In this document: positions 40,605-62,979 of the stretch, in pieces
Numbering within the stretch: the first letter of the stretch is position 1
How the letters are laid out: every line of letters starts with the position of its first letter
NCBI RefSeq assembly: GCF_052425735.1
Contig: NC_135766.1
Coordinates: forward strand, 26,226,001-26,290,000
Direction of reading: 5' to 3'
Source: Oculina patagonica
Taxonomy: Eukaryota
DNA length: 64,000 nt
Notes under the pieces: model-generated
Seen by the model: the letters and a program-made list of their open reading frames with translations, nothing else
What the model was told of the DNA's origin: nothing
Database searches by the model: none
Translations under genes and position numbers: made by a program

Positions 40605-41791
40605 CCCGGATCAAAACCATAACTTTTAAATTTACTTTTAATCTTTTTCAAACTGTTTCTTGTTATCAACTTTGTTGGAATCCGTGGCCAACAAAAACAG
40701 ATACAGACGTTCAAAAGCCCCTCCCCGCCCTTATCAAGCTACGGCCCTTTCCCCAATCATTACCTCTTTACGAAAAGTTGCAAGTACCGTAGCGACGTAG
40801 CGTCCACTTGCCGGCCAACACTAAGTGTGAGAATTTTTGCTAATGTGTAAAAACCAAGCCTTTCAACAAAAAACGCATCTTTTATTGAATTTGACATAAC
40901 GTTAATTTGACAAATTCTTTTATGATTTCTACCGTTGAACACTTCAAACGGTACGTCAGATTTTAATATGCTGCAATCCTGCAAATTAAACCTACAATTG
41001 CTTAGCAAATAAAACAATTTAGAACTACCTACATACAAGATTTACAATATAACAGCATTGAAGAAATTAAATGCATGGACGATTAATATGAATTATTTTG
41101 TAGCTAGATTCGATTTTCTTAATTTTTAAAAGCCACATTTATAATATTTCGAATCCAATTTAATTAGATAATCTGATTTTGATTTTTGTATTCAACCTTA
41201 TACATCATAATTCTCGCTCGTGGAGTAGGTCGAGTAGTGACCGGCATAAAATATCTTCTGTACGACTTATAATTGACTGAGAAGGGAACAAATATGACTG
41301 ACACAACACTAGGCAGGAAAAATCGAGATAGTCTACCAGCTTTAGTCGGTTTCGATGGTCCGGCATATTTGCTGATAATCCGTTGTAACACTTTCAATCC
41401 ACAAGATTGACCAATATTTAATTTATCCTTACATTATCAATTAAGTCTTAAGCAAACAGGAAATGAGAATAAAAAAGTAATCAACTATAAGACAGTGTCT
41501 TGAAGTACTGTTAAATTCTCAGAAATAGCATCGACAGAAATGTATGAAAATCTGTAAAAGGTTAAGCCTGCTGTCGAGCTAAGTGGCTCATCAGGCCGGA
41601 GCTTATCCCGGTTTCAGTAGCATGAAGCGACTGGGAGTATTTCTACTCCCCCTGGATGGGACGCTAGTCCATCCGGCGCAGGATTACCCCCAGCAGAAAA
41701 TTCGCCGGTACCTATTTATACACCTGGAGAAAGCATTATGAAAATATGTAAGGAGAATTAAAAGTAAACGAAACAAAACGCGTTTATCCTT

Positions 41792-42408
41792 TCAACAAGA
41801 AGTTTCTCTGGTAACGAGGGTCTCCAGCACCATACACAGCTCACTAAACTTTGGTCTGTCATTAGGAGACGCCTGCCAACATTTTGTCATCACTTCATAG
41901 CTGAAAAGAAAAACACGAAGCGTTAGTTTTGCGTTTGCTGTTTACTGTCATTGGTTTAAAAGAACTCTTGCAACCAACCAATCAGTGTGTTTGTTAGCCA
42001 GCACGCGAATTTTCCCGCGCTTGGTACCGGTAGCACGTTTTTGCTTCGCGCGTTTTGATTGCTTTATTATGTTTCTTTGTGTTTGTTATTTCTGGACAGC
42101 GGTAATTATTTTGGTTTTAATTTGGTTCTACGAAACCGCTTTTTGAATAAACTGAAAATATAACACGATAAGTGCTGTCATGTTAGCCTGTATAAACAGC
42201 TGAAGCAAGTATTTTGGTGGTAGAGTATAAGGTGAAAATTGAATTAAAAAACTTACATGACGCTTGAACTGTTCACAGGTTTCTCCATTCTGTGTCCAGA
42301 CTTGAGACTTTGTAAAAGATCTTTTGTCTGAATCTCAGGGTAAGGAACAGCGCCTAAAACGTTAATACAGCATTACACCGTTTACACCGCGTTGACATAG
42401 AATATCAT

Positions 42409-42452
<44 letters not shown>

Positions 42453-45400
42453 AAGCTGCCCTTTTAGCGCCAGGTGATGCAAAAGGCCTCATCCATTGAC
42501 AAAAAATTACGTCAGTTGTAATTACACCAAAAAATTCCGTACTGAGGACGTGAATCAACAGTGTTTCTTATTGGTTGTTGCTAGGTAATGAATTTTCGCG
42601 CGCAAGTGGCAACCAATCGGAGAGATCACATAGGCCTATACAGTTCCACATCACCAGTTTGGAATCTTGGGTGAAATTACAGACTGAAGAATCACTCCCG
42701 GAGGATCTGAGTAAAATACAATGTTTGATTTACAGTAACCAGGGACAAACAGACAAAGCCGTTTCACTTACCTCCAGTTTCAATCTCCCATAGAAGAACA
42801 CCAAAAGACCAACTGCGATTAAAAAAGAAACCACTTTTAGATGACAAACTTTAAACAAACAGTACTTTTCAAGTGAGCCCGGTTGTTCCAAGGCAAATAT
42901 TACAAATTTAATCAAAACTCACACATCGCTTTCAGATGAGAAAGTCATCGATTCTAAAGTTTCCAGAGCCATCCACTTTGCTGCTGTCAACTTCCCCTTC
43001 AAAAAATAAAATTATATAAAAAATAATAAAAGAAAAAGGTATTGTGGATACTCGTTTACAAATCGGAAGTATATACCGAGTGCTTGCCATGTAAAAAATT
43101 ATCGTTAAATAAAACGGTCCTTTCACAATCCACGGAAAATGAAATGTTTTATACCCGGGGTGATATCATTGCATCAAAAATCTTACAGGCAAGAGAAGGT
43201 TTCAATCTACTAAAATTAGTGTGTCGTCTCTGACTAAAAAGGGCATGAAGTGCTTTCTCTTTTAGGTGATCAAGTGAGATTTAAAAATTTCCTGAAGAAG
43301 ATATTTTGGTTCCTAAATAAGTATAATCTTGTACAACATCAATTGTTTGTTTTTTCCATATAAAATACATGTTCAGAACATTTTTTTGCACGTGTTTGAA
43401 AAACCATTATCTTGGTTTTTTGGGATTTACGCTCAACATCCACGTGTTGCAGTATGTATCTAATGTGTTAAGACAGTTTTGCAGACCTGTTTTGGAACGT
43501 GATAAAATAATTAAATCAGCATATAGTAGAGCGTTTAATTTTGCACCGTTTGGTAGAACAAAAGGATAATAACATCCAGAATTTTACATTCCTATCAAGT
43601 AAAATATGAGTTAACAATCAACAAATTAGAGAATCATAAAGTTTTCGTATTTTATTTAAACTTACACTTGAAATGTCCTCATGGAACGTCTGATCATGAA
43701 TGTCACGTGAGCAGCCAATGTTGGTAACCTTAGCAACACTGTTTTTACCAAGACAAACGTTCCTTGCTGCAAGATCCTTGTGAATGCACTGTCAGGGGAC
43801 AAACAACGAAGAAGAACGTTTTTAGTTTCTTGTTTTTGTATATGTGCAACACAGCTAAACTAAGCGCCTCGAGACAATATTGTTCAAGTCGTAATAGTAT
43901 TGTATTGTAAAATAAAGTATTGATGAATAAGAACTTAAAATGTAAAGAAAGAAGTTTAAGGTTTATCGAGTTACCCCTTTTTCAGCTATATGCTTCATTC
44001 CTTTAGATACCCCTAGAGCGATCCTAAGTTTTTCCACTTTTGATAAAGTGCACACTTTTTGAGTGGAGTTTGTTTCGTCATTCGCCTGGTTTCGTTGAAG
44101 ATAGTCCAATAGATTCCCATGTTCTGCTTCTTCAAATACGAGATACGTAGGGCCTGGATCGAGTAAACAGAGTCAGACGGTTAATGTAGAGTTTATATCG
44201 TGTCAATTAAAATAACTTAAGTATGAAACTGGGATAAGGAAAGCCAATCGCCTTTGCCTTTAGCAGCGGGGATGTTTCGATCGTAAGAACAAAGAATGTT
44301 AAGTGGTTGCATTCAGCCTTTTTATTTTTCCATTCTAAAGAAACACGCAGAAGAATGAAGGTAACCAGGTGCTAGCTACTCTCCTTTTTGTACCATTTTG
44401 TTGTTAATCCTTCTTTTTTACATAGATCAAGAGATTATTTTTCAGTGTTTGCAAACAACTGAAAACAATATTATTTGACCAATAAGGTATAAATATCAAC
44501 CAATGTTAATTATGCAGCATTACAGTCAGGGGCTTGAGTGTCGAAAAAATGAACAAAGTATTAAACTGAAAGAGCTGTCGTTGATCCAATTACATGTGGA
44601 AGCTAAAGTGGCAATTTGAAATATTTTCCCTCACAAGAACAGCAAACGTTTTCCGTTAGAAAATTATTAATGTAATGTAGCCTTGTTTCTGTCAATTAGT
44701 GTTGCTCCTTGCCCCCGTGACGCATACAAACACTAACACAAACCGCAATACTTTGATCTGGTTTCTTTGTTTTTTCTTTTGGAGGGACGAGGACTCCTCA
44801 GTGTACATAGGTACCAGACCTCCGCGTGCTCACCTTTAATAGTACAAGCTCCAAAGAGGTTCAGTATGTTTGGATGGCTTCCCAAGCCGCTTAAGATTTT
44901 AAGCTCGGCTAACAGATCATTTACATCATCTAATGATCCACTTTCCTCAATGTAAAACTCTGCAAAAAGTAATTCTGTTAAGCAAGTCAAACAAGTTACT
45001 TGAGCCTACACAGTGTAATCTTCAGAAAAAGTACAAGTAACGAAATAAGTATCTGAAATAACAACAATGAACACTATTATTAAAATGATGACGATGATGA
45101 TAGTATGTCACATCAACTGAGGTAAAATGTTACTACTGAAATTGTTCTAGATTATTTTTAATTTCAATGGATTAGTCTTTGTGTAATATTTTCAATACCA
45201 CCGCTATAACTTTGAACAAAAAGAATCTAAGATGGCAAAATCGTGCTACAGTGCAACAGGTTTAACGAGTTTACTCTTCTCCCAAATTGTGTTGCGTTAT
45301 ATTTTCATTTAATACTGTAGTTGTAAAAGTTGTGTGAGGCCCTGCCAGGGGGGTTCGCGTGTCGCTTGTCTAAATTTAAAAATGTGCCATGTTGCTATTT

Positions 45401-48400
45401 TATCAAACTCCGCGTCGCTGTCGGTAGTAAAAGTGAAGGAAAATTACTTGCCCTTGTTGGAATTTAAGTTTTTCCAGATAGACGTCATTTGTTGTGATTT
45501 TATTTTTTGTTCTTTTGCTACTTTTTGGGCCAAGTCGCTTGTCGGAATTTACCCTGGGGCCTCTGTTGTCAATGACGTTTTACTGGTGAATTAAAATGGA
45601 GTCGCACTCCAATCCAACCTAGTCCCAGGGCTTTTTTCCCTTCCATCCTTGGACGAGATTGACTGTAAGTGCACTGAAACTGAAAGCGTGATCCCCACCC
45701 ACCCTCTGTAGCTACAGAAATAGCCTTCTTTTTCGTCTCTAGCGCTACCATATCACAGTGTTCGGTAAACAGGGCAGCATAGACTTACCCTTTGTCGTTT
45801 TCACAATGCAGTTTGCCATGTTTCCATTTTCCAGGCAAAGTTTCCCGTGAAATGTTGCTCCGTCAGACTCGGTCCCAATCTTCTCTCCTAGCGTGAGTTG
45901 TTCTCTTGAAATCTCGCACCAGTCTATCTCGTCGTTACCCTCGGTATCTAATTTAACATGGTAAGAGGAGTCAGCTCTCTGGAATCCTGGATTTGTTTGC
46001 CCGGTTTCTGTGGACTAAGAAAACTACGTTGTGATCTACGAATCAATTTCACTGAACAAACAGTGAAACATGGCCCGCTGTCACAGGGCGCGGGCCCCCC
46101 GGCGAGACGGCCAGCGAGAGGGCGCAGCGCGACAGACGAGAGGACAGAGGGAGGGCACGGGGCGAGACCCCAAAAGTTATTATTATTATTATTATTATTA
46201 TAGTGATCGAAAAAATAACATTTATGAATGTTAGAATCTCAGGTTGTTAGCTAGATTCCTTGTGACCATTTTATTTTGACCGAAAGCGGGGAATCGACCA
46301 TGAAAAATCCTGCTTTAGGATGTAACGTTCAGTGTAAGGTTTAACTTGCAATGCACTTCCACTGTGCAAGGCTGTCCAGGGGGGAGGTATATATACCAAT
46401 ATATCTTCACAAAACAACAACAAACAATTATCTAATACATCCTAAATTTCCCCCAAAACGCCCAAAAATATCCGAGAAAAGAAGATAAGAAATGATAACA
46501 TAAAATGTCTACGTACGAGGCTAACTTCACTCATATTCACGAATTCTCTTCTGAAGTCGTGTTCTCCTCTCTGTTTCCGGTAACACCGGAAGTAGAACGC
46601 GAAAACCAAGATCAGAAGTATAGCACCACACGCCACAGGGAGACCAATTTTCAGGGCAGTGTTCAGACTTGATTTTTCTAAAAAATAATTCATGAATTCA
46701 ATGAACTGAAGGCAATCTACTGAATCCTAAACAAGTTTAAAGCTTGTGAAAAAAAAAACAGTTTTACATGTACTGCGTTGGTGGCCAAAAATTAAATTAT
46801 TTTCGTGTTGAATCGCGCCACAATTTTCCACCAAAAGTATTTCATATTAAATTTGATGTCTAACCTGTGTTTTTAGCTGTTTCTCCCGTAGAAGGCGTAT
46901 TTGTGGAGCTACCTGAATGGCACAGAAATAGAAACAAACTTTAGATATACCCTGTGTAACATTTACTAAGAAGGTCCAGACTCAGTGATGTTTTATTGGT
47001 GCGTTCCCGAAGAAAGGAATTTTCTATATTTAGCCTATGCGACTTCCATCCTACGTCGACGCTCGCATGCTATACTTTTTTAGAGCTAAGAAACACGGTT
47101 TCCAGCTAATCACAACGAATATTTTCTATTGCAGTTGTGAGGTTTGATCATTCTTGATTGCATACTGGCCTGTTTGCTTCAGCTCATAGCTTAGCGTCAA
47201 TAACGCAGTGCTTAATGTACAGCAAGTTTTTACTTACTTGAGTGTTCAACCCGACACACCACGCCAGCGTCATTATCGTGGTCCCAGTAGATGCCTGCTA
47301 TTCTGGGCCAGGAGCATTCCCATAATGACTCTTCATGTCCCTGGCATTTAAGGTCTGAAATCCAAACAGGACCTTTTCCTTTTCCAAAGGGCCCCACAGT
47401 GGACAATATGGCGGACTCGGCTCCTGGGTAGCCCAGTTCTCTACATGCCACGTTTGAGGTGTTGAGATTCCAGCCTCTATTCCGGATTGTACCCCAGACT
47501 CCAGCAACGAAAACTTCCACACGGCCAGCAAAAGTCACATTTCCGCCAGCGAGCCTGATTTTCTTGACTATTAGAGCAATAAAAAAGTAATATGAAAAGT
47601 TTCATGAAAGTTTAGTTTTCATATTAAATTTCTAAACTCGTCAAGTTTAAACAAAGGAAATCATAACCTTCCTCAGTCGTATGGCCTGCTTCTCCATAGA
47701 AAGCGAGATGGGAACACCGTCATCATTCCCCTCTCCGCAGTCGAAGGTGAATGTGTGCTCATTCCCGTGCCGGTGTCGTCACCTGCGTCGCAGCGAGTGA
47801 AGATGAGGGAGAGGCCCACCGCCGACGCACCCGAGAGACGACGCGCGGGCGTGGGGCCAGCGCGCCAGTGGAGCGGAGCGACCGCGGGGAGGGGCCCGGC
47901 GTGAGAGGGGCGCGGGAGCCACCAGGAGGAGATGGGAGGCCCGAGGGGGACGGGCGAGGAGGCGGCGGACGACCAGGACGGGAGGCGGACGACGGGGAGA
48001 GAGAGCCGCGGGGCGAGCAGAAGGAGGGGACGCCCGAGGACGACGGGGAGAGGACAGCGGGGAGAGAGGCCGCAGGGCCGCGAGGACGCCCCCGGGGACG
48101 GCCGCGACCGCGCGCGGGAGGGGAAGGGGGAGACCGGGGACACGCGCGGGACAGGGGACGCCGGAAAAGGCAGAGGACCCGCCGAGCAGAGAGGCCCCCG
48201 CGGCCGAGGACAGCCCGCGCGGGCAGAGGGGGGACCGAGGAGACAGGGGGTGGTTAAAGGTTAGTTGGATGGAGGGAGATGCTGTGTAGCGAGAGGGATG
48301 AGGATGTTAATTGTGAGTGCTGCCTTCGAGATGTTGTTAGAGAAGTGGTAGGGGTTGAATTGTATGCATGCTCGTTCGGGTCTAGAAGTGTTCTACATAG

Positions 48401-48775
48401 TCAGGAGGGTGTAGGTGGGAGGGTAGAGGGAACTCCTGCCTGAGGGGGTGTTCTAAAATTGTTTTCTTTAGTGATCATCTCTCGTCGAGGAGTTTCTTAT
48501 TAGAGAGGTTAGTGATGAAAGATGTAGACTCGTGTGTGAGTCCTCGAGTTTTGAGGGATTGGTGAGAGGTCTAGGCGTAGACTTTGAGTACTCTTTGCCT
48601 CAGGGAGCAGAGAATGGTTTTGGACTTTTTAGGTCTGTTAGAAGTTTTCTTTGACTTTTTTTGCTTAAGCATAATACCTTTTTTTGTGTTTGAGTGTATG
48701 TTAGCTGTTTAGGAGTGTGGTGAGCGTAGGACTTGTTTTTGTGTAGTTTTTTTGTACTTGTGGAAGAAATTAAAA

Positions 48776-48806
<31 letters not shown>

Positions 48807-50842
48807 TAACCGTGACGATGGTTTGAATATCTGCCGATCTTAGAATAGATTTTTTTATCTTATTTCTCCGTTTTCGTCTTAGTTTTAGTTTCGATTAACA
48901 AAATACACTGTATAATATAATCTTAATTATAATCTTAGTTTGTTTTTCCGTTGGTTTTATTTCAATGGTTGAATTGTAATCTTGGCTGTTTAAGTTGTAA
49001 CGTTTTTCTTAGTTGTTCATTCCCTGATAAAGTCAGACCGTGCCTGACGAAATATTGGAAGGAAAATATACAAGTTCAATCCGCCTACCTCACGGTCAGT
49101 CATTCTGATTTTTATTTTTTATTTTTTCGTATTAACAAAATAAGTCAAACACTAGAAAGTATTTTATCACCTTCTAAAATCCTCGAAGTTCGTCAAAAGC
49201 TGTCAGATTTGCGTTGTATTTTCAACTCTCTTCTCGGTAATGTAATGAAACACTCTTTCGGGATTGATATAATACATCTAAATCGAGGACACCTTACCTA
49301 ACTTACTTGACGTACAGACTACACCTGCTTCAAGCACAGGTCCAGGAGTAAAGGTCAAGTTGTGCGGACACTCACTCAACGAAGATTCATTCCCAAGGCA
49401 CTGGACATTGTCTACCCATTGAATAGTCAATGCATGCGCGGTCCATTTGGCGCTAAAAATGAAAGTCGCACCGCGAATGGCAAGTTCAGCACCGGAAAAA
49501 CCCAGCTGCTTGCAAGCCACGTGAGCATCTGTGAGTTGCCACGTGGATCTGTCAATCGCGCCCCATTTTCCCGCCAAAAGTACTTCCACCCGGCCAGCGT
49601 ACGTGACCTGTGCACCGTTTAGACGAATGTGGAGATCTGGTAACGAAAAGTTGCATTTTATGCCGTCATCGATACTATCAAATACGGTAAAAGTAAAAAG
49701 GACCATACAGTACTTAGAGAATTATTTACTTAGAGTTAAAAAGGCTAAAGTCGGTATCCTCTTAGAAATGTCATGCTCCATGCCCAGAAATCTTTTGCGC
49801 AATAAAAAGGTAAAGGTCAAGTCTGCGTTCGACCTTAGTGGCCTATCAGACCGGAGCTTATCCCGGTTTCAGTAGCATAAAGCGAGTGGGAGTATTTTCA
49901 CTTCCCCGTGGATGGGATGCTAGTTCATCGCAGGGTTACCCCGAGTATTACTTTCGCAATGCCTCTTTTCACCCAGGTGTATAAATGGATACCGGCGAAT
50001 TTAAAGTGTCTTGCGCAAGAACATAGGGCCAGGGCTCGATCCCGGACCGCTCGATCCGGAGTCCAGCGCACAATCCATTACGCCACCGCGCTTGCCACGT
50101 GCAACTCAATGTACTGTCATGAAGAAATCACTCCACGAAAAGCAACATTTGTACAGTCCCACGTGTATTACGTCACTCGGGATTCCCGAGAACACGCGGA
50201 AAAGTGAGAGATTAGAGCCGCCATGTTGGCATGCTGTTGTGTTACGAAAATCCTGGTTACGAAGGAATGCTAAAGTAAAACTCGCCCAACGCGACATGTA
50301 CCTGTTTGACTTGTGTTTTGACAAACCACTCCAGCATCATAACCAAACGAGCTTCTGAACCTTTGAAACCCGTGAGTACAATTTGTCAAATAACTTTCGT
50401 TTCCAACACATTGCACGTTGTCGATCCACGTGACCACATTGCTTATTCTTGCTAGCCAGGCACTACATCTCCATAGAACTGTCAAAACATCCTGGTACCC
50501 AAGCTGTCTGCAGATCACGCGGCCATCTTCTTGATCCCAGCGAAACATCCCAACGTCGCCCCAGACCCCTGCGTACTTCACTTCCACGCACCCAGCATAA
50601 TGGAATGGGGTGTGGGATAGGCGAGCTTCTAAGGGAAAACCTAAAAATATAAGACATAAAAGGTTAGGAAGATTTTGTGTAATATTGTCTTTAATGTTCA
50701 ATTTAAGCGAGCTCTCAAGACATATCTTTTCAAACAAGCTTTTTATTAGTGTGTATTTTTTGTTTTAATTTAAGGTCATTAAGGTCATGTATTCATTGCG
50801 CTCCTTCTGCGCGTTTTTTTTGCGCGCGCTGCGGCTTTTTTT

Positions 50843-50892
<50 letters not shown>

Positions 50893-52223
50893 GGGAGGGG
50901 CAAAACCCCACCGTTATACCGTATTGGCGATCATGCATGAAAGTGGTAATTTTAGGAAAACTTGAGCCACACCCAGATTGTTCTCCTGTTGAGGTTAAAT
51001 TCAAATCTTCTGAGGAGCATCCCCGTTCTTTTTATATGGGAGTCCCCGGGGCTCTGTTATGGTCCTAAGGGTTAAAGATAACTTGAAGTTAAATAGGTTT
51101 CTGCAACCTTGCATAAGATGTAAATTGCTTTGTTGTAAACTTACTTGTTGACACGTTGGGGTTTGCACAAACCACGCTTGCAACGTCAAAGCCACTGATA
51201 CATATATTTTTACCCCAGTTCTTGTATTCGCATTCAGCAAGACTGTTTTCATTTCCTGTACATTTAACACCAGTCAACCAGAACAGACTTGTATTAGGTC
51301 CGAAAGCATTACAACATGGGGTGGCAACGGCTTGTGGGTAACCAAGCTGTTTGCATATCACGTGACCTACACTGATATTCAAGCCGTTATCACAAACCGA
51401 GCCCCAGGTTCCATTGAAATTCACTTCCACTCGACCAGCATGTCGCACTGGGCCACCAGTTAATTTCACGCTAATGTTCAGTGCTGAAAAAGTGAAACAA
51501 GTAACAACTAAAAAAAAAAAATAAAATTAAAAAACAAAGGAAAATAGATTTATCACCGTTGATAAAATTGTGAGCTGTTTATTTGTGTTTCCTGTTATGA
51601 AAACCATTTGGCTATTTCTAAAACAGCAGATTCCTGTTTTTGAGATTCCCCCTTTTAGAGATTTCCCGTTTTAGAAATTCCCCCTATTAGAGATTACCCC
51701 TTTTAGAGATTCCTCCTATTATATAGAGATTACCCCTTTTAGAGATTCCCCCTATTAGATATTTCCCCTATTAGAGATTTCCCCTTTTAGAGATTCCCCG
51801 TTTTAGAGATTACCCCTTTTAGAGATTCCCCGTTTTAGAGATTCCCCCTTTTAGAGATTTTCCGTTCCCCGTTCCTTGTTCCCCAACTCCCCAATTCCCC
51901 ATTTCCCGTTTCAGAGATAGCCAAAACCATTTCGCGACTTTCAAATCACGAGAACACGATAGAAACATGTGCGGTAGAGGTTATCTGAAAATCAGCTTAA
52001 GGAACTAATTAAAGGCGGGCGATCGACACGACACGAAATTTAAAGGATTTGGACAGATTAGATAACAGATAGGGTGACAGCTGACACGAAATCTTCATAA
52101 GCAAGAAATACAAGTTGAAGGATACAGACAAATAAGACTTTCACAAATTTTTTCTTATGGATTACCTTGTGTTGTGGCACTGAGTAGAAGGAATGTGGAA
52201 CAAAGCGTCCAACCAAGCGCCAT
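41792..52223 (-). CDS. SRCR-domain receptor tyrosine kinase-like protein (signal peptide, 4 SRCR, TM, predicted pseudokinase), 14 exons, about 840 aa
   Basis: Exons 52223-52166 (SP), 51483-51145, 50640-50302, 49636-49307, 47567-47238 (SRCR1-4), 46677-46526 (TM), 46014-45789, 44959-44834, 44153-43975, 43788-43666, 42996-42923, 42812-42772, 42353-42257, 41900-41792. Open frame throughout. TK motifs HPNILNLFGACT, HKDLAARN, KWMALE, SDVWSFGVLLWE, CWQASPNDRPKF. Confidence 0.9.
42405..42452. repeat. (CAT)n microsatellite
   Basis: Trinucleotide run in an intron. Confidence 0.9.
45337..45562. mobile_element. MITE-like repeat with GAGGCCC..GGGCCTC termini
   Basis: Short TIRs and internal GTCGC repeats; possibly related to sequence at about 5110-5290. 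Confidence 0.45.
49803..50095 (-). mobile_element. tRNA-derived SINE
   Basis: Reverse complement is homologous to 23577-23938. Confidence 0.7.
51610..51922. mobile_element. Mutator/foldback-like MITE with an internal minisatellite of about 18-bp units
   Basis: GGCTAT...ATAGCC termini; exact 10-bp TSD AAAACCATTT; about 12 copies of TTAGAGATTCCCCNTT-like units. Confidence 0.8.
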
Positions 52224-53734
52224 GATTGGTTGCTTTTAACGTGTTACGTCATGGGTGGCGCATCTGGAATAAATTAGCATAATCATTTCAAGTATCCATC
52301 TGAATCTTCCCCAAATTTATTCGTTCTTGACCCCTTTTACAACATTCTTGATATTTCTTTAACTTATTAAACTACAATTAGTTTCAGGTTTCTTCAATTA
52401 GAACCGAGGTAATTTTTTTGCAGAATATCCTGGCTGTATTGGGGCTGTATTCCTCACGAAAATGAAAATTAATCCTGACATAACTTGATACACCGCTAAA
52501 AGCTGAATTTCTTTAAGGAAAGGGGATAAAATACTTACCATGAGTTAAATTCCTTTTCATATAAACGTCTTTCAATCCTTAATCCATCAAATGACCGTAA
52601 GTTTCTTTTCAGTCAGACGTTAAATGTTTTCTCAGATAAGTTTGCAAAAATGACTACATGATTTTATTTGATTTGTAAACAAAAATCCATTAACAGTTCT
52701 TTAACCTCTTTGATTCCTATCTTAATACTTTCATAATCTAACGAAACTGAGAACTTGTTAATGATGTTTCCCATAAGCAGAAAAAAAAAAAAAAGACCAA
52801 AAGAAGTGTTGTGAATGGACGTGCAAGGACAAAATGAAAAAGTTTGAGACAGTTGTGTGGAGGACATCCTCAACCCGGGATCCTCAACATTGCGCGATTC
52901 TTGACAGAATAATCGTAGGCTAGGGGCGTTTCAAGTGTTTCTTATTACTGTTGAAATTGTTGTTAAGGATCAAGTCCAGGATTTAGTTAGCTTTCCATAT
53001 GGTCACGATATCTCGATCACAAGGAAATTTGATGAAATCGGACAAACTAATACAGGTTATTTATTAGTTGTTGCATTCCCTGTTCGCATTTGCCTTTCAA
53101 GAGGATAAGATTGACTCTAAGTGAACTGATGTATAGTTATATGGTGTGCGTGCAAGCGGCGGAAATTTGAACGACTAATTCTGTATCATGCAAGGCAGCT
53201 AGCGCTTGAAAACGCCACGATCCAAAACCAAGATTTACACTTACCTGAAAATTATCGATATCTCCTGCAATAGACGCACTGGGAGGAAGGCAGCCGAATG
53301 TTTTCCGTCAGAAAACAAACAGAAAGCTGACAAGAAAGTTGTGGGATTTGCTTTCGCTCAAAAATGTAACCTTTTAACCTTAAAACAGGTGACGTGATAT
53401 AGAGAGTCATCAATTGCGAGATAGTGTTTTGATGAAACACCAAATTCTTACAATGTTCTCGAAAAGAATAAATAATCATCAGTTAGGAGAATTTAGGAAT
53501 GAAAGCGTAAGTTGACGGCTAAGCCGTCGGGGTTATCTGATTACAGAATTAGCTAGCACTTAATGTTACAGCCAATGACGGCATTTTTAATTAACCGCAA
53601 CAATGAATTGTTACACCAACAAACACGTTTGTGCCTTTGATTCCAAACACGCTGTGCATGTTCTTGATTGATTTCTAGATAATTTGTAAAACGATGATAA
53701 CTACCTCTTAAACATATAGAAACCCTTTGAAATC

Positions 53735-55054: not shown

Positions 55055-57935
55055 TAACCGATATTCGCGCTGCTCCTACTTGAACTAAACGAACTTCACT
55101 AACAGTTATACACTAACGTTAAATCCAGCTTTGTTTTAGCTCTTTTCTGTATTTTAACCCCAACCAAAATGGTATGTCTAATGCGGTGTGAGAATATTGT
55201 GTTACATCAAAATAATTAAGATAATTACCTTATTGTCAGTTAAACTATTAAATATATAATCCTTATTAAAGCTGGTAATGGCCAGCCGAAATATTGTATC
55301 CACGCCTATATACACGGTGTTTAATCGGTCTTTATAGGCCTGTTTTTATTTCATTTAGACTGTTCGCGATCTGTCAGTGATCCAACGTTGAACAAGTTTG
55401 ATCGTACACGGGTTTTTCTGTAGTGGTTTTTCTGAACCTTTAAACGTTGCAATCAGACTGTTGATCTTTTTCGCTGACAAGCGATTGATAGACAAGTATA
55501 ATCAAGCCGTCGATGTCCCCTAAAGTCAACAGAAATGACGTTTCACAAAAAAAATGTGCCTCTTAAGTCAACTTAACTACTATCAAATTATTTTAATAAC
55601 CCCTTCGATGGTGAACAATAATCTTGTTCGCACGAATTAACTTTGATCATTATTGGTTAAGCGTGTGCGAAACAGGACTTACAAAAAAAGCATATTATTT
55701 TTCTTTTTCTTAAGTATCTCTTAAGGTCCCGTGATTTAATTTTCAAACAGTTTATTTAGGCCTGAAGTACAAATATCACGTCAAAATTAGAAAGGTTTAG
55801 AAGAGCACGTCAAATTCCATAAATGCTTGTGTAAAAGTTTTGATCTCTAAACAAAACAATCACAGCTTTAGTGAGTAGATACAGTAACGTCTTAAGATAG
55901 TTTCAATTTAGGAAAGCGTTCATTGACGTTAATAGACTCTAACACAAGGAATTTACTAAACAAAAGAGAAAAAGTGTCTTAGTAAAAAAGTTATCAGACT
56001 TCCAAATAGTTTTCATTGTTGATGCAAATATTGTCTTGAAAGTCAGTAAATACGGCTTGTTATTACTTTCGCTGTCCATTTACTTTCCCACGCTTTGAGG
56101 TCGAAATAACTATGCATGAACGCATACCAAGAGTAGAAAATATTAAATCAATAAAAGTTCGTTTGTGAGAGCAAAGACATAACCTTGTTTGATACAATTT
56201 TTCATCTGTTCATTAAGATAATCTTTCTTATCCTGGCTCAATACAAAATACGTCACGCAATTACCTTTTTTGCACATATTTAATGAGATACAACGTACAC
56301 ACTGAGCATAAGTTGACAGAAAACTGTTTAAACTGAAACAGCGTACCGAACTCGTGCTGTACGAACCTACAGACTCCATTTCCACCAATAAGTTTTCTTG
56401 TTTTGTCGATTTCACAACCAATATTATCCCCTGACTAATCATACCCTTCAAAATGAACATTTTTTGCCTGTTATTTTCCGTGGTAATCATTTCAAATCGC
56501 CGCTTGTTTGAAAGCAGGGATTTGTGTTTTATTAATGGAAATCTTGGCTGTCTTCGAATTGGTCAGAAACAACCGCAGGGATCCACACTTGGCTAATGTT
56601 TTTGCCAGTTTTGCATCCAGTAGTTAAAGCGAAATTTAATTGTTAAAATATTGTTGCCTTACCTTGACTCCGCTTCTTTATTAGATTTGTAAAACTTCCT
56701 TCAACTTGGAGATGTGTCCATTTGTAAGATGATTCAATGCTGATTTTTCTCCTGCGGGGGCCAACGAATTTGTTGCTAATAACCTTAATCGTTATTAAGT
56801 TATCCTCGATTTTCTACAGATATTCTATCAGTGAATCTCTGGGGATTCTCCAAAGATACCTTTTACTGAATAATATGATTGTTCGACGCTCACGGAGGAT
56901 TGAGTGAGCGGGGCACTGTGTGAGCGTAGGAGTCTGGTATCTAGTATTAGGAACTGCATCTCGTCCCCAGTTCACGCTTTTTTTTGTCAGCACCATGAAC
57001 GCGGACTCTTTAGCGAACTCTGGCCGTCTGATTTTGGGGCATGCACAGAGTGCTTATTTTTGATTGTCAGCCAATCAGATTTGAGCAGGAGTCCGTTTAG
57101 CGCACACTTTAAAATCAGACCTAGGCAGAGTCCGCTGACAAAAAGAAAAACCGGGCTATTGTAGTGGTTGTAATGTGGATAAGGGTCTGTTACCTTGGTT
57201 TTTTAAAATTTCAAACCCAGAATCCATAATAAATTAACTTTCACGACATTTCATCGACGCCTCGTGATAAAAAGATAAGTCTGTTACAGTAAAGTTAGGC
57301 AATTCTTAATGGTAAGCAATTCTTGTAATTTCTCAGTGGCGAGCGATAAATTACTCTGATGTATGACGAAGGCAGAGGCAAGAAACGTATCTGCGCGATG
57401 ATTCTGAGAATCGAGTTTAATAACTGTTTTAGCGCAGAACTGCGCACGAGCGGAATATTATTTTCCGCAATGCGCAGACCATTATTTGTAGAAACTGTCA
57501 TAGAAACTTATTTGCGGGTGAGTAGGCGGTTTCTCAACCAATCAAAAGAAAGCAAAAAGATAAAGTCGGGTGATAATAATATTTATCAATGGAATAATCA
57601 ACGTTATCTTTCGTTAATGTGTGCACCTGTCCTGTTGACAATGAGCATTTCTTTTCAAACTCAACAAGCAGCTCATTTCCCTTCGCATTCATCGTAAGTT
57701 TGAAGCTTAAAAATTGAATATAATATCACACAGGTGCATAATAAAGTTGTCAATCATAAGTCAACTTCTTAAAATATCTCAGGCTATGGAAATGTCACGA
57801 CTTATTCAAATTACCTTATTTTATTAGCCTTCCGGTTTAGAATCTAGCAGCGTCAATTCGTTCAACGCTTGAATCAATCACGCAAACAAACTGTGATATA
57901 CAACTTTGTACATAAACTTCAGAGGTCACGACTAG

Positions 57936-60900
57936 ATGAAAACACTCAGGAATCTGACTTTACAGTTCAAGCTGCTTTTTGTGGGTAGGTTTTCGTATGC
58001 TGATAATTAACATTTTCCGAATCGCTCATCGTTCAGCTGGTTGTTAAAATTAAAATGATCCTTTTCGTTCAACGTTGAAAGTTTAAAGAGCAAATGTACA
58101 GACAGTGATTTTCGATGTTCTCGTGAAAGTCAAGCAAACAGTCAACAACAACAATAACAATTACAAAAAAAGTTAAGCAAGGCCGCGAGGAAGAAGAAAT
58201 CTCAAAGAAATGATCGAAAGAACGAGCCATGATAGGAGATAAAAATTCAACACGAAAGTGTTAAATGTATTTTCAGAGGGCACAGAACATAGCTGATTTA
58301 AAAATTATTTAAATATTCCCTTAACCATTAAGATCTTAACATTAGTGAGGGGACGGTTTCACAAACATAAAAAAAAATATAGAAGCCTTCTATAATTGTT
58401 TCTGAGCCTGATTGAGCATGATTTCCTAATTATATAATTATCAAAATAAAAACTAAGACATTATTTAAATAATTACAATAATACCATACACTAAAACGAT
58501 GTTAACTATGAGTTTATTTTTGGTGTGCTCTATCTTAGTTTTGTTTTGTCTTATTAATATTGAGGAAAATTCTTCAATGATGTCACGGCTTGTCTTGTTA
58601 AATTATGTTCCCAATCTTAAATTTCAAGATTTATGTAAACAGCTTTAGGCGAATCTGCAGCGAGAGCAATTCACGATATTTCAAATTTTATGCAAAGTAC
58701 GAACGATTGAAGGCAATATTACTGTATTTAATTTCTAACTAACGAATGGTTAACACGAATTTCGGGTATTTTTCTTGTCTGCTTGTAAGTGTGAATTTTT
58801 AATTACTTAGGTGTTCAGACATCACATAATAAAAAAATAACAATAAAACTTGTGTACATGTATGTGTTTGCTAACAGTGATCAAAATTATGCAAATACTC
58901 TTATCGGAAGAAATCGGATTAATCACATATTGTGAGCCTTTAGTGTCATTCGCCAGCGGCTATTACCGTGTCTGCAGGTTATTGAGGAGGAAGCTTATTT
59001 ACTTATTTATTTAGTCAGACTGGAAGCTATGGGACGGGGCTAGATTACTCCTGGAAAACTGAACACTCAAAACAACAATTTCTTAATTAAAAAGACTATA
59101 AACAATAGCTGCAAAAAACCCCAAGAATTGTAAGTTAGCAATAATTGTTTCCATGACAACCACAAATATGCACTATGTTCTATAGGAGCACTTTGGCAAA
59201 GTTTTAAAAGACGATTGATGCTGTAAAATGTGTTCGTCATATTATTCTACATGTTTTCTTTTTAGTGTTATCAAATATTACAGCTTTCCAATCTTCCATC
59301 TTTACGGAATCGCAAGGTATGGAGGCATCTCTTTATTCTTTCTATTTAATTCTTGGTAGATTAAACAAAATGTACCGAAGGAGTTGCCAACAGCCAAGCA
59401 TTTCATTTCCTGCTGTCGTCCCTTCCATTTCTTGCCCATAGGAAGGAGCCCATCACTAGGATGGTTTCGGAAAAACAATGGACATCTGAAAACTTAATAA
59501 CCTCTTACAAGCTAGGAAGAGTAGGGGAGGGACAGGTGAAGTCAGATACTTCTGACGTTAACTTGTCACAGACCTGATTAGTGGCTGCTAGACTCGCTCC
59601 AACCTAGTTCCCAGGGTCCCTCTTCCCGCCCTCCAGAGCGAGAGACCCGTCTCTCTTCTCTCGCTCTGGGGGGGGGGGGGGGGAGAGAGAACCTAGGAAC
59701 GAGGTTGGACGACGGTCCGGCTGGCTCTGTACTGTCATTGTTTGCATACGACAACCTTTTAAAACAGCTGTTAATTTTTTCTTGTTTTTTTTTTTAACAC
59801 TCGCAATTTGTGCAGCTGGTGTTATGACTTCAAGTACGTTCACAGTGGGAGTAAATCTATCAACAGTGGACACAGGCCTCCAACCAGCAAATACCTCTGC
59901 ATCCACACTGAAATTAAGCCCATCTTTCGATGCAACAGGCTTACAACGTACAAGTCCCTTTGTGTTCACACCGAGATTAAGTCCATCATTAGGCGACACA
60001 GGCTTTCAATCTGCAACTTCCTTTTTATCCGCAATGACGTTAACCTCATCCTCACGTGCCACACGGTTCACAAGTACAGGCTCATCAAACTTTACAGGGG
60101 TAAAACTCTATCATTTCATTTCTATGCAGGCAGCTGTGGATGAAATGTGAAAAATCACGTTAAAATGTTCACGATACACAGACACTGCAGCTTTCCGAAA
60201 ACTACTTTATCATTGCTCGCCTGGCGTTTGGCGGCGAAACTTTCTTCTGAAAATAGTCTACTGACATTCCAAATTGCAAATTGCACCATTAGGGCTAAAT
60301 TCCGCGTCAACAGTGTAGAAGAGTAATAAGCTAGCCAATGCAAGACAAGAAGGAACTACTGCTAAGTCCATTACGAAATCTATAAAATTTATTAAGCTAA
60401 ATATTGTTTTATGTTCTATTTATTATTAGTATTGATGTTTTTCATTTCAGAAGAATCAACAATCTCTTTCAGCCTGTCGATGGACCGCCCTTGCCAGACA
60501 GGTAGAAATAAACTGTTCCAACTAAAAAAAACTGAATAGAAACAGTTTCATAGTTGTTATTTCAAAAAATAAGGTTACTATCTTCCTATTTCAAACTTAC
60601 AGTGTCGGGCAATTTAAGTCCGACCGCATGATCAGGGTCGTTGTACTACGTGTTCGTAAAAGAATTCGAAAGAGAATATTACGGAGCTTAAGCAATGACG
60701 ACGCCGCCGCCGAGGACAACGCCTAGTGAAAAATAAATTAATATTCCGCTCGAGAATCTCGCGATTATCCAGATGTATTCAGTGTATCTCCAAATAGTAA
60801 TTCGAAAATTTAGCCGTCGTCGTTCAGGTTCTTCAAAATACGCAGAATTTGGCCATTTCAAGAAATGTACAAGATTTATGACCCACGTACAGAGTTATTA

Positions 60901-62979
60901 TTCTGCTCATTAATCTTTTTATTTGGTGACGTTTTCGTTCACGTTGCCGTCGTAGCTTGCTTAGGCTTCCTAATGGACCAGTTTTCCAGCTACCTTTAAG
61001 GTGACTAGGCAACTAGAGTTTGTAAGACGGTAACTTCATGTGCAGGGACATGTCGCAGCGACATGTAGGAGGCGCAAAAACACAACAAGTATACACACAC
61101 AAGAAAATGTAGCGGGAATGTGCCACACATGAGAGGACGTGTCCCGCAAAATGTCCCTGTAACATTTTCTTGTGGTTGCATACGATGAGACTTTGTCCCC
61201 AGGGGCGGATCCAGATCTACAATTCAGAAAGAGGGCACCGAGGATAGTGTGGCGATGGCGCAAAGCCCCCCTTCACACTCATTTTCACACAAAACGATTG
61301 CGCCAGGATTCATGAGAAACAGGGGTAAAATGAACTCAGGAATGGCTGATTAAAATTTTATTAAGCCCCTTCAGCCCACCAAGGAAAAGGGCAACCTGAC
61401 GGAACACTAACGCCGAAGAGTCGGGGGGCGGGAGATAACCTGTGTTAGCATAACCCAGCTGCCGTCTATTGGCAAATCGCGCGATCTGATTGGCTACACA
61501 GGTGCCGTCTATTTAACAATTAGACGGCAAGCTCGAGGTTTCTACCGGCTGATAGTTCACCTCCAGGCCCAAGGATTGAAATTGATTTTCACCTTTTTTA
61601 AGTTTCTTTACATGTTAAATAAACCGTCTATTTTTTAAATCGCAGTGCCACCTAAAGTCGCCTCTGGGTTTATTCCAGGCAATACTTCGTCAACAGGTAA
61701 CTGATCAATGACAACATACGGAATATAATATTTTTTTTCAAGATATGTGATTATTCTAGTTTGTAATATCTATATTTCCACTATTATTAAAAAGTTATCT
61801 ACAGACCAGGACAAAAGAACCTTTCTTTTCGTATTCATATGATTTGTTCATGGCCCAAACTGGCGAAAGATAATACCAAAAATAGGGGGCATATATATAT
61901 AGCCTCTCAGAAGGGGGGGGGGGAGACTACATATTAAAGGGCAAGGGTGCTCATCGTCCACGCTTAGTGGTGTAAATTATGGATTTTTGGTCTCACTTAG
62001 GATGTTTCGGGCAAAACGCCAAATTTTTTAGCCGTCAAGGTCTCTTTTAGGGTTGCACATGAAGAAAGATACAAATATAAATTATATTTTTAGTGTTTTG
62101 GTATCTTTTAAGGAGTTGAGCCACGCCTTGATTGGTCTCGTTTAGGGTTCATTTTAAAATTTCCATAGCGCATCCCCGCCTCTTTCTTATCCCTTACATA
62201 CGGGAGTGCCCCACCCCGAAGGCGTGATAAGTCCCTACGGCCAAATTTAATAGATCTAGAACTTGAAGGATTAAAACAGCGGAAGACTATCGGTTCAGTC
62301 TTGGCTTGTTAATGCCGGTATCTTGCCTGTACTGATGTGACGTATTTTCTAAGGTGAACCTCTGCCTCTCCTGGCTAAGATTCTTATTCCAGTGGCTGGT
62401 GTCCTGCTCATTGTTGTCGTCATGGTAACTTGGTTCTGCTGTGTACAAAGGAAGGAAACTCGAGACTGTGACGACTTCGTTATTGAATCGACTCTGATGG
62501 TGAGTTATTGCACGCATCGGAATAACAGTGAACTATAATAAAACGCCTTCCATGAAATAAAACACGCGAAGGTTACAGTATTGTCCAGTGCGGATCCAGG
62601 GAAGAGGCCTGGGTTGCCCGGGCCCCCTCCTTATTTTTGGAAAAATACATGTTTAATTACTCCCCTCACCAAATTGTATTTTGGGTACACACACACGCAA
62701 AAGGGCCCCTACCCTTAGTTCAAGGTCTGGATCCGCCACTGTTGTCTAGCTAGGGGAGCGAAGAGATTGGGAGGATATATCATGCCGAATACATGCAGAG
62801 GACTACACAGAGAGTCTATCCACAGGGAACTCTTGGGGGGGGGGGAGCAACTACACCAGAGATTACTTAGTTCGGGACTGTGATCAGGGGAACTACTTCT
62901 TATGTGAAATGTGAATCTCTTTTCTTGATTCTGTTAGGTCAGACTTGATGTGACCGAGGATCCTGGTCTGTCCTCTTAA
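57936..62979 (+). CDS. Ser/Thr-rich mucin-like type I single-pass membrane protein, about 215 aa
   Basis: Proposed exons 57936-57984 (MKTLRNLTLQFKLLFV), 59266-59316, 59816-60073 (about 21-aa S/T repeats), 60451-60501, 61646-61696, 62354-62499 (TM ILIPVAGVLLIVVVMVTWFCC), 62938-62979. The exon 3 donor is uncertain. Confidence 0.6.
59600..59707. mobile_element. CAACCTCGTTCCCAG-family hairpin MITE
   Basis: TIR caacctagttcccagggt/acctaggaacgaggttg; a 50-bp relative lies at 9786-9835. Confidence 0.65.
60681..60972. mobile_element. MITE
   Basis: Imperfect TIRs ggagcttaagcaatgacgac / gtcgtagcttgcttaggcttcc. Confidence 0.5.
62586..62741. mobile_element. hAT-like MITE with 5-bp TSD
   Basis: CAGTG(G)CGGATCCAG...CTGGATCCGCCACTG; TSD TTGTC. 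Confidence 0.7.

Follow-up and report, generated by a model that had tools for sequence, protein, structure and literature searches.

A predicted receptor tyrosine pseudokinase with an SRCR ectodomain in Oculina patagonica and other Hexacorallia

Only a few receptor tyrosine pseudokinases exist in humans, where they have been studied intensively, and to our knowledge no human receptor tyrosine kinase (RTK) uses an SRCR ectodomain. Invertebrate RTKs often carry lineage-specific ectodomains. Sweet Tooth, a cnidarian RTK of Hydra, has intact kinase motifs and a C-type-lectin-like ectodomain, a domain of the pattern-recognition type. CD163, DMBT1 and MARCO recognize microbial and polyanionic ligands through their SRCR domains, and scavenger receptors of corals and anemones are suspected to take part in symbiont and microbe recognition. 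The human receptors PTK7, ROR1/2 and RYK signal without catalysis (PMC13259870). In C. elegans, a pair formed by an RTK and a pseudokinase has been reported to act in pathogen recognition (PMC10523662). Here we describe a gene of Oculina patagonica which joins four SRCR domains to a tyrosine-kinase fold with altered catalytic motifs. It lies in a stretch of 64,000 nucleotides (nt), called the window throughout (assembly GCF_052425735.1, contig NC_135766.1, positions 26,226,001 to 26,290,000; all coordinates below are those of the window), and its product is probably an ancient hexacorallian type-I receptor tyrosine pseudokinase predicted to signal without catalysis.

Spliced contigs from four public RNA runs (X1-X4) were aligned to the locus. 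They define a coding sequence on the minus strand that runs from an ATG at 52223, with an in-frame TAA upstream of it, to a TGA at 41794-41792, and that is divided into 15 coding exons encoding 862 amino acids (aa) in an uninterrupted frame. An earlier reading of this DNA, made from the letters alone (the sequence-only reading), had given the minus-strand coordinates 41792-52223 and the domain order correctly, as judged from the ATG, the stop, the stop-free stretches with four SRCR-like, one hydrophobic and several kinase-like segments, Pfam matches and hydropathy. Its 14 exons and 840 aa had to be replaced by the RNA-based figures, since at least one short exon was absent from that model, the short ones being of 48 nt (46912-46865) and 41 nt (42812-42772). 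All 14 coding introns were GT-AG after small alignment ambiguities had been resolved, and each exon-exon junction was covered by spliced contigs in all or most of the four runs. A 2450-nt contig of run X2 extended from the 5' untranslated region (UTR) to kinase exon 11 and included exon 1, all four exons with SRCR domains, and the stalk and transmembrane (TM) exons; a 1339-nt contig of run X3 connected the TM exon with exon 15. Contigs spanning SRCR, TM and kinase exons showed zero mismatches. Since single contigs bridge both parts, the SRCR and kinase exons belong to one transcript and not to two genes, and with this RNA check of the splice model the possibility of separate SRCR and kinase genes, named in the sequence-only reading, is ruled out. 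The gene is expressed.

The kinase fold departs from an active tyrosine kinase in several of its motifs, and all those listed in the sequence-only reading (GTESDG, CIVK, HKD, NIG, QTFHED and RETSC) were present in the translated model. Exon 8 (45789..46014, minus strand as all exons; junctions and alignment) encodes the juxtamembrane region with NPGF and DWCEI, the Gly loop GTESDG (aa 585-590; 45876-45859) and CIVK with the beta3 Lys (aa 607-610; 45810-45799). Exon 9 (44834..44959; a piece of the match to Pfam PK_Tyr_Ser-Thr, here PK_Tyr) contributes the alphaC helix with the conserved Glu of LLAELKIL, and exon 10 (43975..44153; PK_Tyr E 6e-06) the part from the hinge to alphaE. HKDLAARN (aa 718-725; 43782-43759), NIG in the place of DFG (aa 738-740; 43722-43714) and the activation loop QTFHED (aa 748-753), which contains no Tyr, are all encoded by exon 11 (43666..43788; PK_Tyr E 1.1e-07). 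They are followed by the P+1 loop in exon 12 (42923..42996; junctions and translation), where WMALE replaces WMAPE, by WSFGVLLWEI of alphaF in the 41-nt exon 13 (42772..42812; junctions in four runs) and by the C-lobe in exon 14 (42257..42353; junctions and translation); the motif DVWSFGVLLWEI was also found. Exon 15 (41700..41900; PK_Tyr profile positions 234-256) comprises the end of the C-lobe, the C-terminal RETSC, the stop and a 3'UTR that runs into a repeat. The features expected of a competent catalyst are missing in the Gly loop (GTESDG) and in the DFG triplet (NIG), and the Lys, the HKD Asp and the catalytic Asn are present.

A search with exon 8 alone in 1.84 billion representative proteins returned eight matches in total, among which a 655-aa protein combined SRCR and PK_Tyr domains, and searches with the full-length orthologs found were then carried out. 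The SRCR-plus-kinase architecture was recovered from Montipora foliosa, Porites evermanni, Pocillopora meandrina, Pocillopora damicornis and Desmophyllum pertusum, from two unlabelled coral-like transcript assemblies (L001 and L002) and from Nematostella vectensis. Identity to the O. patagonica protein was 75% in Desmophyllum (partial), 62% in Pocillopora and Porites, 55% in Montipora and 36% in Nematostella. In the coral orthologs the PK_Tyr profile was covered from 1 to 257 of its 258 positions, with E down to 1e-68. Four SRCR domains were present in the four full or near-full-length coral orthologs and six in Nematostella, the Desmophyllum model being N-terminally truncated. Copy number and restriction to Hexacorallia refer here and below to the matches listed in these word-based searches, among which there was one gene per species, with two isoforms in Nematostella, whose gene products are XP_048590444/445. 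In isoform X2 of the latter, the C-lobe after WEIETG is swapped for a short unrelated tail by an alternative 3' end, and in X1 the domain is complete. The public names of the orthologs are 'Deleted in malignant brain tumors 1', 'SRCR group B protein-like', 'unnamed' and 'hypothetical'.

The protein consists of a signal peptide (aa 1-20), SRCR1-4 (aa 21-469), a Ser/Thr-rich stalk, one TM helix and 346 cytoplasmic residues that are mostly kinase fold. Signal peptide, ectodomain, single TM helix and a PK_Tyr fold with DLAARN and a WMAPE-type P+1 loop are the architecture of the RTK superfamily. Exon 1 (52166..52263; junction 51483/52166 in four runs) carries the 5'UTR, the ATG at 52223 and the signal peptide. 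Each SRCR domain is encoded by a single exon, in phase 1-1 throughout: exon 2 for SRCR1 (51145..51483, 339 nt, 8 Cys; Pfam SRCR E 5.8e-27, junctions), exon 3 for SRCR2 (50302..50640, 339 nt, 6 Cys; E 1.2e-19), exon 4 for SRCR3 (49298..49636, 339 nt, 4 Cys; E 1.4e-20) and exon 5 for SRCR4 (47238..47567, 330 nt, 4 Cys; E 1.4e-27). With 71-96 bits against a Pfam cut-off of 26.1, the four domains belong to the SRCR superfamily. Single-exon domains are a trait of group B, which has 8 Cys per domain; with their Cys pattern of 8, 6, 4 and 4, which is kept in the orthologs, the domains appear to match neither textbook group A nor group B. The ectodomain has 12 N-glycosylation sequons. The stalk is encoded by the 48-nt exon 6 (46865..46912; junctions 46677/46865 and 46909-12/47235-38 in four runs), a candidate for the exon that the sequence-only model lacked, and exon 7 (46517..46677; hydropathy and junctions) encodes the TM helix, the only hydropathy peak (aa ~493-516), together with the start of the juxtamembrane region. 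Single-exon domains in phase 1-1 are the classic substrate of exon shuffling, and this architecture probably originated when such SRCR exons were shuffled onto a cassette of TM helix and kinase.

Two short motifs of the cytoplasmic part were also compared among the orthologs. The juxtamembrane N-P-x-F (aa 546-549; 45993-45982) is found as N-x-x-F in all scleractinian orthologs and not in Nematostella. After the kinase domain there are only about six residues, and the C-terminus reads RETSC (41809-41795) in O. patagonica, RETTC in Desmophyllum and KATSC in Nematostella isoform X1, at 36% overall identity, those of Pocillopora and of the acroporid-like sequences being different; the shared C-terminus may be a conserved PDZ-type ligand.

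An ectodomain built only of SRCR domains, of which SRCR4, the best conserved (60-76% identity to coral orthologs), has the SRCR domains of CD163 as closest solved structures, with per-domain similarity peaking at CD163, could also belong to a receptor that is mainly endocytic or phagocytic, the cytoplasmic part serving as a platform for uptake adaptors. The N-x-x-F motif, which is NPxF in most corals, would fit such a role by its resemblance to NPxY/F sorting or PTB-binding motifs. However, its absence in Nematostella and its imperfect form in Porites and Montipora speak against a conserved sorting function, which would also leave the retention of a full kinase fold unexplained, and we consider a scavenger receptor of this kind improbable.

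The comparison of the orthologs instead points to a receptor with a dead kinase domain. The Mg-binding Asp of DFG is changed to Asn in 8/8 family sequences, which thereby agree with the sequence definition of a pseudokinase, and NIG is invariant in the O. patagonica protein, the five named scleractinians, the two unlabelled transcripts and Nematostella. In all eight sequences the Gly loop departs from the canonical form, and its variation between species (GTESDG, GTECDG, GSESDG, ESELTG, GTEFKA, GSELNV, TSGTIR) indicates that there is no constraint to clamp nucleotide. The beta3 Lys and the alphaC Glu are invariant across the family. HRD is retained in Nematostella and has become HKD in corals; Pocillopora, with HKG, has lost the catalytic Asp, and Desmophyllum and Porites, with DLAARS, have lost the catalytic Asn. 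Among the other aligned kinases, 20 of the 21 FGFR, Tie and cnidarian RTKs had all four canonical motifs, and outside the family deviating motifs were seen in an RTK model of Culex, whose Gly loop is degenerate, in an RTK of Stylophora, where YRD replaces HRD, and in one cytoplasmic kinase from the outgroup. The pseudokinase call of the sequence-only reading thus gains in strength, the DFG Asp and the Gly loop being absent in 8/8 family sequences and their nearest kinases canonical. As read from the alignment, the family has the motif loss in common as a derived character; individual lineages have since lost more of the catalytic residues, with the fold conserved throughout, and both NIG and the loss of the Gly loop predate the split of corals and sea anemones.

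The same residues bear on the possibility that the protein is an atypical yet active tyrosine kinase, with Asn at the DFG position and catalysis in the absence of a Gly loop, like kinases that were at one time misclassified as dead. Such an enzyme would display what is found in the O. patagonica protein, namely a beta3 Lys, an alphaC Glu, the Asp of HKD and the catalytic Asn, as well as purifying selection over the whole fold, as described below. The change of the DFG Asp to Asn, on the other hand, is a standard kinase-dead mutation, and orthologs differ freely in the Gly loop, which contains acidic residues. Moreover, because orthologs have lost the Asp (Pocillopora) or the Asn (Desmophyllum and Porites) while the remainder stays conserved, catalysis is not the conserved function. 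An active kinase is therefore very improbable.

Next, the placement of the kinase domain was obtained from a maximum-likelihood tree of 33 kinase domains. The kinase phylogeny proposed with the sequence-only reading has thereby been run against FGFR and Tie, two of the four kinases that it named, and the family is separate from both. The family formed a clade with a support of 100/99, and its sister (96/96) was a cnidarian-only RTK clade, whose ectodomains are of SEA, Ig, FN3, Frizzled and Kringle type. The bilaterian FGFR and Tie clades fell outside the group formed by the family and the cnidarian RTKs, and from this tree position the family is therefore not an FGFR or Tie ortholog. The best solved structures for the whole kinase domain were those of FGFR1-3 (E ~1e-62), but the SRCR-only ectodomain and the separate bilaterian FGFR clade are not those of an FGFR family member. 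As to PTK7, the sequence-only reading had stated correctly that it also has HKD and an altered DFG, given as HKD..N and ALG in Table 2 of PMC13259870. The O. patagonica protein has no Ig domains, of which that receptor has seven, and NIG instead of ALG, so that HKD alone is shared with the PTK7/CCK4 family. Orthology to PTK7, which is absent from the tree, was set aside on the grounds of the ectodomain and of FGFR1-3 ranking first among solved structures. Since FGFR/Tie-like RTKs of cnidarians are the group in which the kinase domain falls, the likeness in HKD and altered DFG to PTK7, ROR and RYK is probably convergent.

In order to know if the gene is decaying, as the sequence-only reading had asked, dN/dS was estimated for a single ortholog pair, the acroporid-like L001 and L002 (89% aa identity). 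The value was 0.375 overall, with 0.45 in the ectodomain, 0.53 in the TM and juxtamembrane part and 0.26 in the kinase domain, well below 1, and thus the gene is not a decaying one. Between the window allele and the RNA contigs there were 33 exonic differences, 21 synonymous and 12 non-synonymous (crude pN/pS ~0.17). In the cytoplasmic part, 10 were synonymous and one was non-synonymous, versus 11 and 11 in the SRCR part. The sole cytoplasmic replacement was D589V (position 45863), located within the degenerate Gly loop; a related fragment, P0001, also reads GTETVG. Domain by domain, SRCR4 and the kinase were the most conserved parts, the latter with 57-82% identity among corals. These results indicate that the gene is under purifying selection and that the dead kinase is its most constrained module.

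This constraint bears directly on the decoy role that had been offered in the sequence-only reading. The receptor would then sequester ligand or act as a dominant negative, with a functionless intracellular domain. A dead kinase with neither a C-terminal tail nor a conserved docking tyrosine outside the core would be in line with it. Nevertheless, the pseudokinase is precisely the most conserved and constrained part (dN/dS 0.26; 57-82% identity among corals), and NIG, Lys and Glu are invariant from corals to Nematostella, whereas in a receptor that only sequesters ligand one would expect the domain to be lost or degraded; a pure decoy is accordingly unlikely, and this explanation as a whole very improbable. 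Finally, although novelties of domain architecture are often gene-prediction errors (PMC3927609), a fusion of adjacent SRCR and RTK genes by prediction, or a decaying pseudogene, is virtually impossible here, given zero-mismatch spliced contigs that bridge SRCR, TM and kinase exons, a frame open over 862 aa, the same architecture in the independent transcript assemblies L001 and L002 and in five annotated genomes, and a dN/dS well under 1.

The receptor is thus likely to be non-catalytic, and for a receptor tyrosine pseudokinase of this type the following mechanism can be proposed. The SRCR ectodomain would bind a ligand, and the conserved dead kinase would act by protein-protein contacts with no phosphotransfer. 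Across the family there is no conserved tyrosine beyond the kinase core, and the activation-loop Tyr of most orthologs is His in the O. patagonica protein. Because there is neither a C-terminal tail nor a conserved non-core tyrosine, a HER3-like scaffold for phosphotyrosine docking appears unlikely, and the fold itself would have to be the effector. To judge from the invariance of the Lys-Glu pair and of the Asn in NIG, selection may have favoured a specific conformation of the domain. Most plausibly, the pseudokinase would pair with an active RTK and regulate it, in the manner of other receptor pseudokinases. Such a heteromeric allosteric partnership is the most economical model because the kinases closest to the family are active and occur in the same phylum, although we would hold a partnership with an active RTK to be a tentative and somewhat doubtful proposal. 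The apparent single copy and the fixed number of SRCR domains point away from an arms-race family and towards a conserved, specific ligand. A putative role in microbe or symbiont sensing is conceivable, though less likely than not. Taken together, the family might represent an undescribed RTK class, older than the split of corals and anemones, in which a dead kinase of FGFR/Tie type serves as the ligand-binding allosteric half of an RTK pair and couples phosphotyrosine signalling to the recognition of microbes or symbionts by SRCR domains; this full version is speculative and rather unlikely in all its parts.

Several points weigh against a pseudokinase that signals through a partner. Activity or ATP binding was later demonstrated for some pseudokinases predicted from sequence, and the retained Lys and Glu may leave nucleotide binding possible in this family. 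Single copy and Hexacorallia-only status apparently hold among the matches listed, and the dN/dS values come from that one ortholog pair, with a dS of only 0.13. In addition, tblastn found no other SRCR or kinase exon in the 64-kb window, so that it contains neither a cluster of such genes nor a genomically paired partner.

Other features of the locus were recorded along with the gene. At its 5' end, RNA contigs reached 139-230 nt past exon 1, and their first 30 nt mapped uniquely to 56665-56694. They belong to a non-coding exon 0 (56663..56894, minus strand) 4.4 kb upstream, whose 3' end is fixed at 56663 by the donor AG/GTAAGG at 56663/56662 and whose 5' extent is approximate. The 5'UTR in exon 1 (52263-52224) contains two very short upstream open reading frames directly before the main ATG (ATG CGC CAC CCA TGA and ATG ACG TAA). 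Alternative splicing at junction 42812/42923 was considered for run X1 and rejected, the 3-letter difference being a single nucleotide polymorphism, D780E. Intron 11 (42997-43665, minus strand) contains stop-free frames like the reverse transcriptase of retrotransposons without long terminal repeats, with a degraded YADD box (…LLYADLIIL…). RNA contigs lie over 42967-43517, one of which passes the exon 12/intron 11 boundary with no mismatch, and the contig depth at the junctions of exons 12-15 was 2.5-3 times that of the upstream exons in runs X1, X2 and X4. The intron 11 signal could come from intron retention or from a short transcript initiated in the transposon.

In intron 4, the GC-rich low-complexity block 47650-48300 has stop-free frames of 160-195 aa on both strands, rich in Pro, Arg, Ser and Gly. 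These were rejected as exons, with an RNA depth of zero in 4/4 runs and the block lying within the spliced-out intron. Intronic simple-sequence tracts at 42399-42461, 46170-46212 and 50831-50901 (a GAT/ATC codon-like run and long A/T runs) had been excluded as repeats from the RNA alignment. A plus-strand repeat with two copies, 41583-41741 and 49838-49984, encodes …GAYPGFSS(M/I)KR(L/V)GVF…; its RNA contig depth, in the thousands, is that of a high-copy expressed element, and the 3'UTR of the gene is adjacent to the first copy or overlaps with it. The divergent plus-strand neighbour comprises a Ser/Thr-rich mucin-like frame (59608-60147) and a TM exon (62353-62535), neither of which had a Pfam match. 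This TM exon showed only a weak similarity to the TM/juxtamembrane exon of the gene, with 34% identity over 38 aa (E 8e-4 in a single comparison of hydrophobic sequence), and is at most a putative paralogue of it.

With regard to novelty, which the sequence-only reading had left to a database search, the gene models are already public under uninformative names, whereas no published description of a receptor with SRCR domains and a tyrosine kinase was found in open-access text. A survey of cnidarian scavenger receptors lists SRCR domains with CUB, trypsin, Ig and other domains, and no kinase domain (PMC5119243), and a paper on the actiniarian immunome does not mention an SRCR-kinase receptor (PMC5094078). 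What is new here is a receptor tyrosine pseudokinase with a new class of ectodomain; the sequence itself is already in databases. It offers a natural, long-conserved case for the open question of how dead kinase domains signal. The apparent single copy and the presence in Nematostella make the function directly testable, and Nematostella is genetically tractable, with gene knockout and single-cell atlases. Under annotations such as DMBT1-like or SRCR group B protein-like, a receptor with a kinase fold goes unrecognized, a point of importance when the immune and signalling repertoire of corals is surveyed.

Compared with known systems, the O. patagonica protein shares with human PTK7, ROR1/2 and RYK the type-I topology, the full tyrosine-kinase fold, HKD, an altered DFG and the retention of beta3 Lys and alphaC Glu. 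Their ectodomains are of Ig, Fz/Kringle or WIF type in contrast to SRCR, and their triplets are ALG, DLG and DNA in contrast to NIG. OLD-1/FLOR-1 of C. elegans (KIN-16 family), which act in oomycete recognition, are reported to provide a precedent for a lineage-specific receptor pseudokinase that works with an active RTK (PMC10523662); they belong to an unrelated lineage and have no SRCR domains, and a pairing of the coral protein would be hypothetical. The cnidarian-only RTK radiation, whose members are automatically named FGFR-like, Tie-like, ROR1-like and MuSK, is the sister of the family with 40-45% identity in the kinase, but its sampled members have GxGxxG, VAVK, HRD and DFG, and SRCR domains occurred in none among the matches listed. 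FGFR1-3 are the best matches to the whole domain among solved structures, and their juxtamembrane W-E-x-P-R and activation-loop layout align with the O. patagonica kinase; unlike it, they are active and have an Ig-like ectodomain and a YY pair in the activation loop. Finally, CD163, DMBT1 and other class I scavenger receptors have, like the O. patagonica protein, an ectodomain made solely of tandem single-exon SRCR domains, but receptors of the CD163/DMBT1 type are secreted or end in short tails and have 8 Cys per domain, whereas the coral protein combines a Cys pattern of 8, 6, 4 and 4 with a cytoplasmic tail that is a kinase fold.

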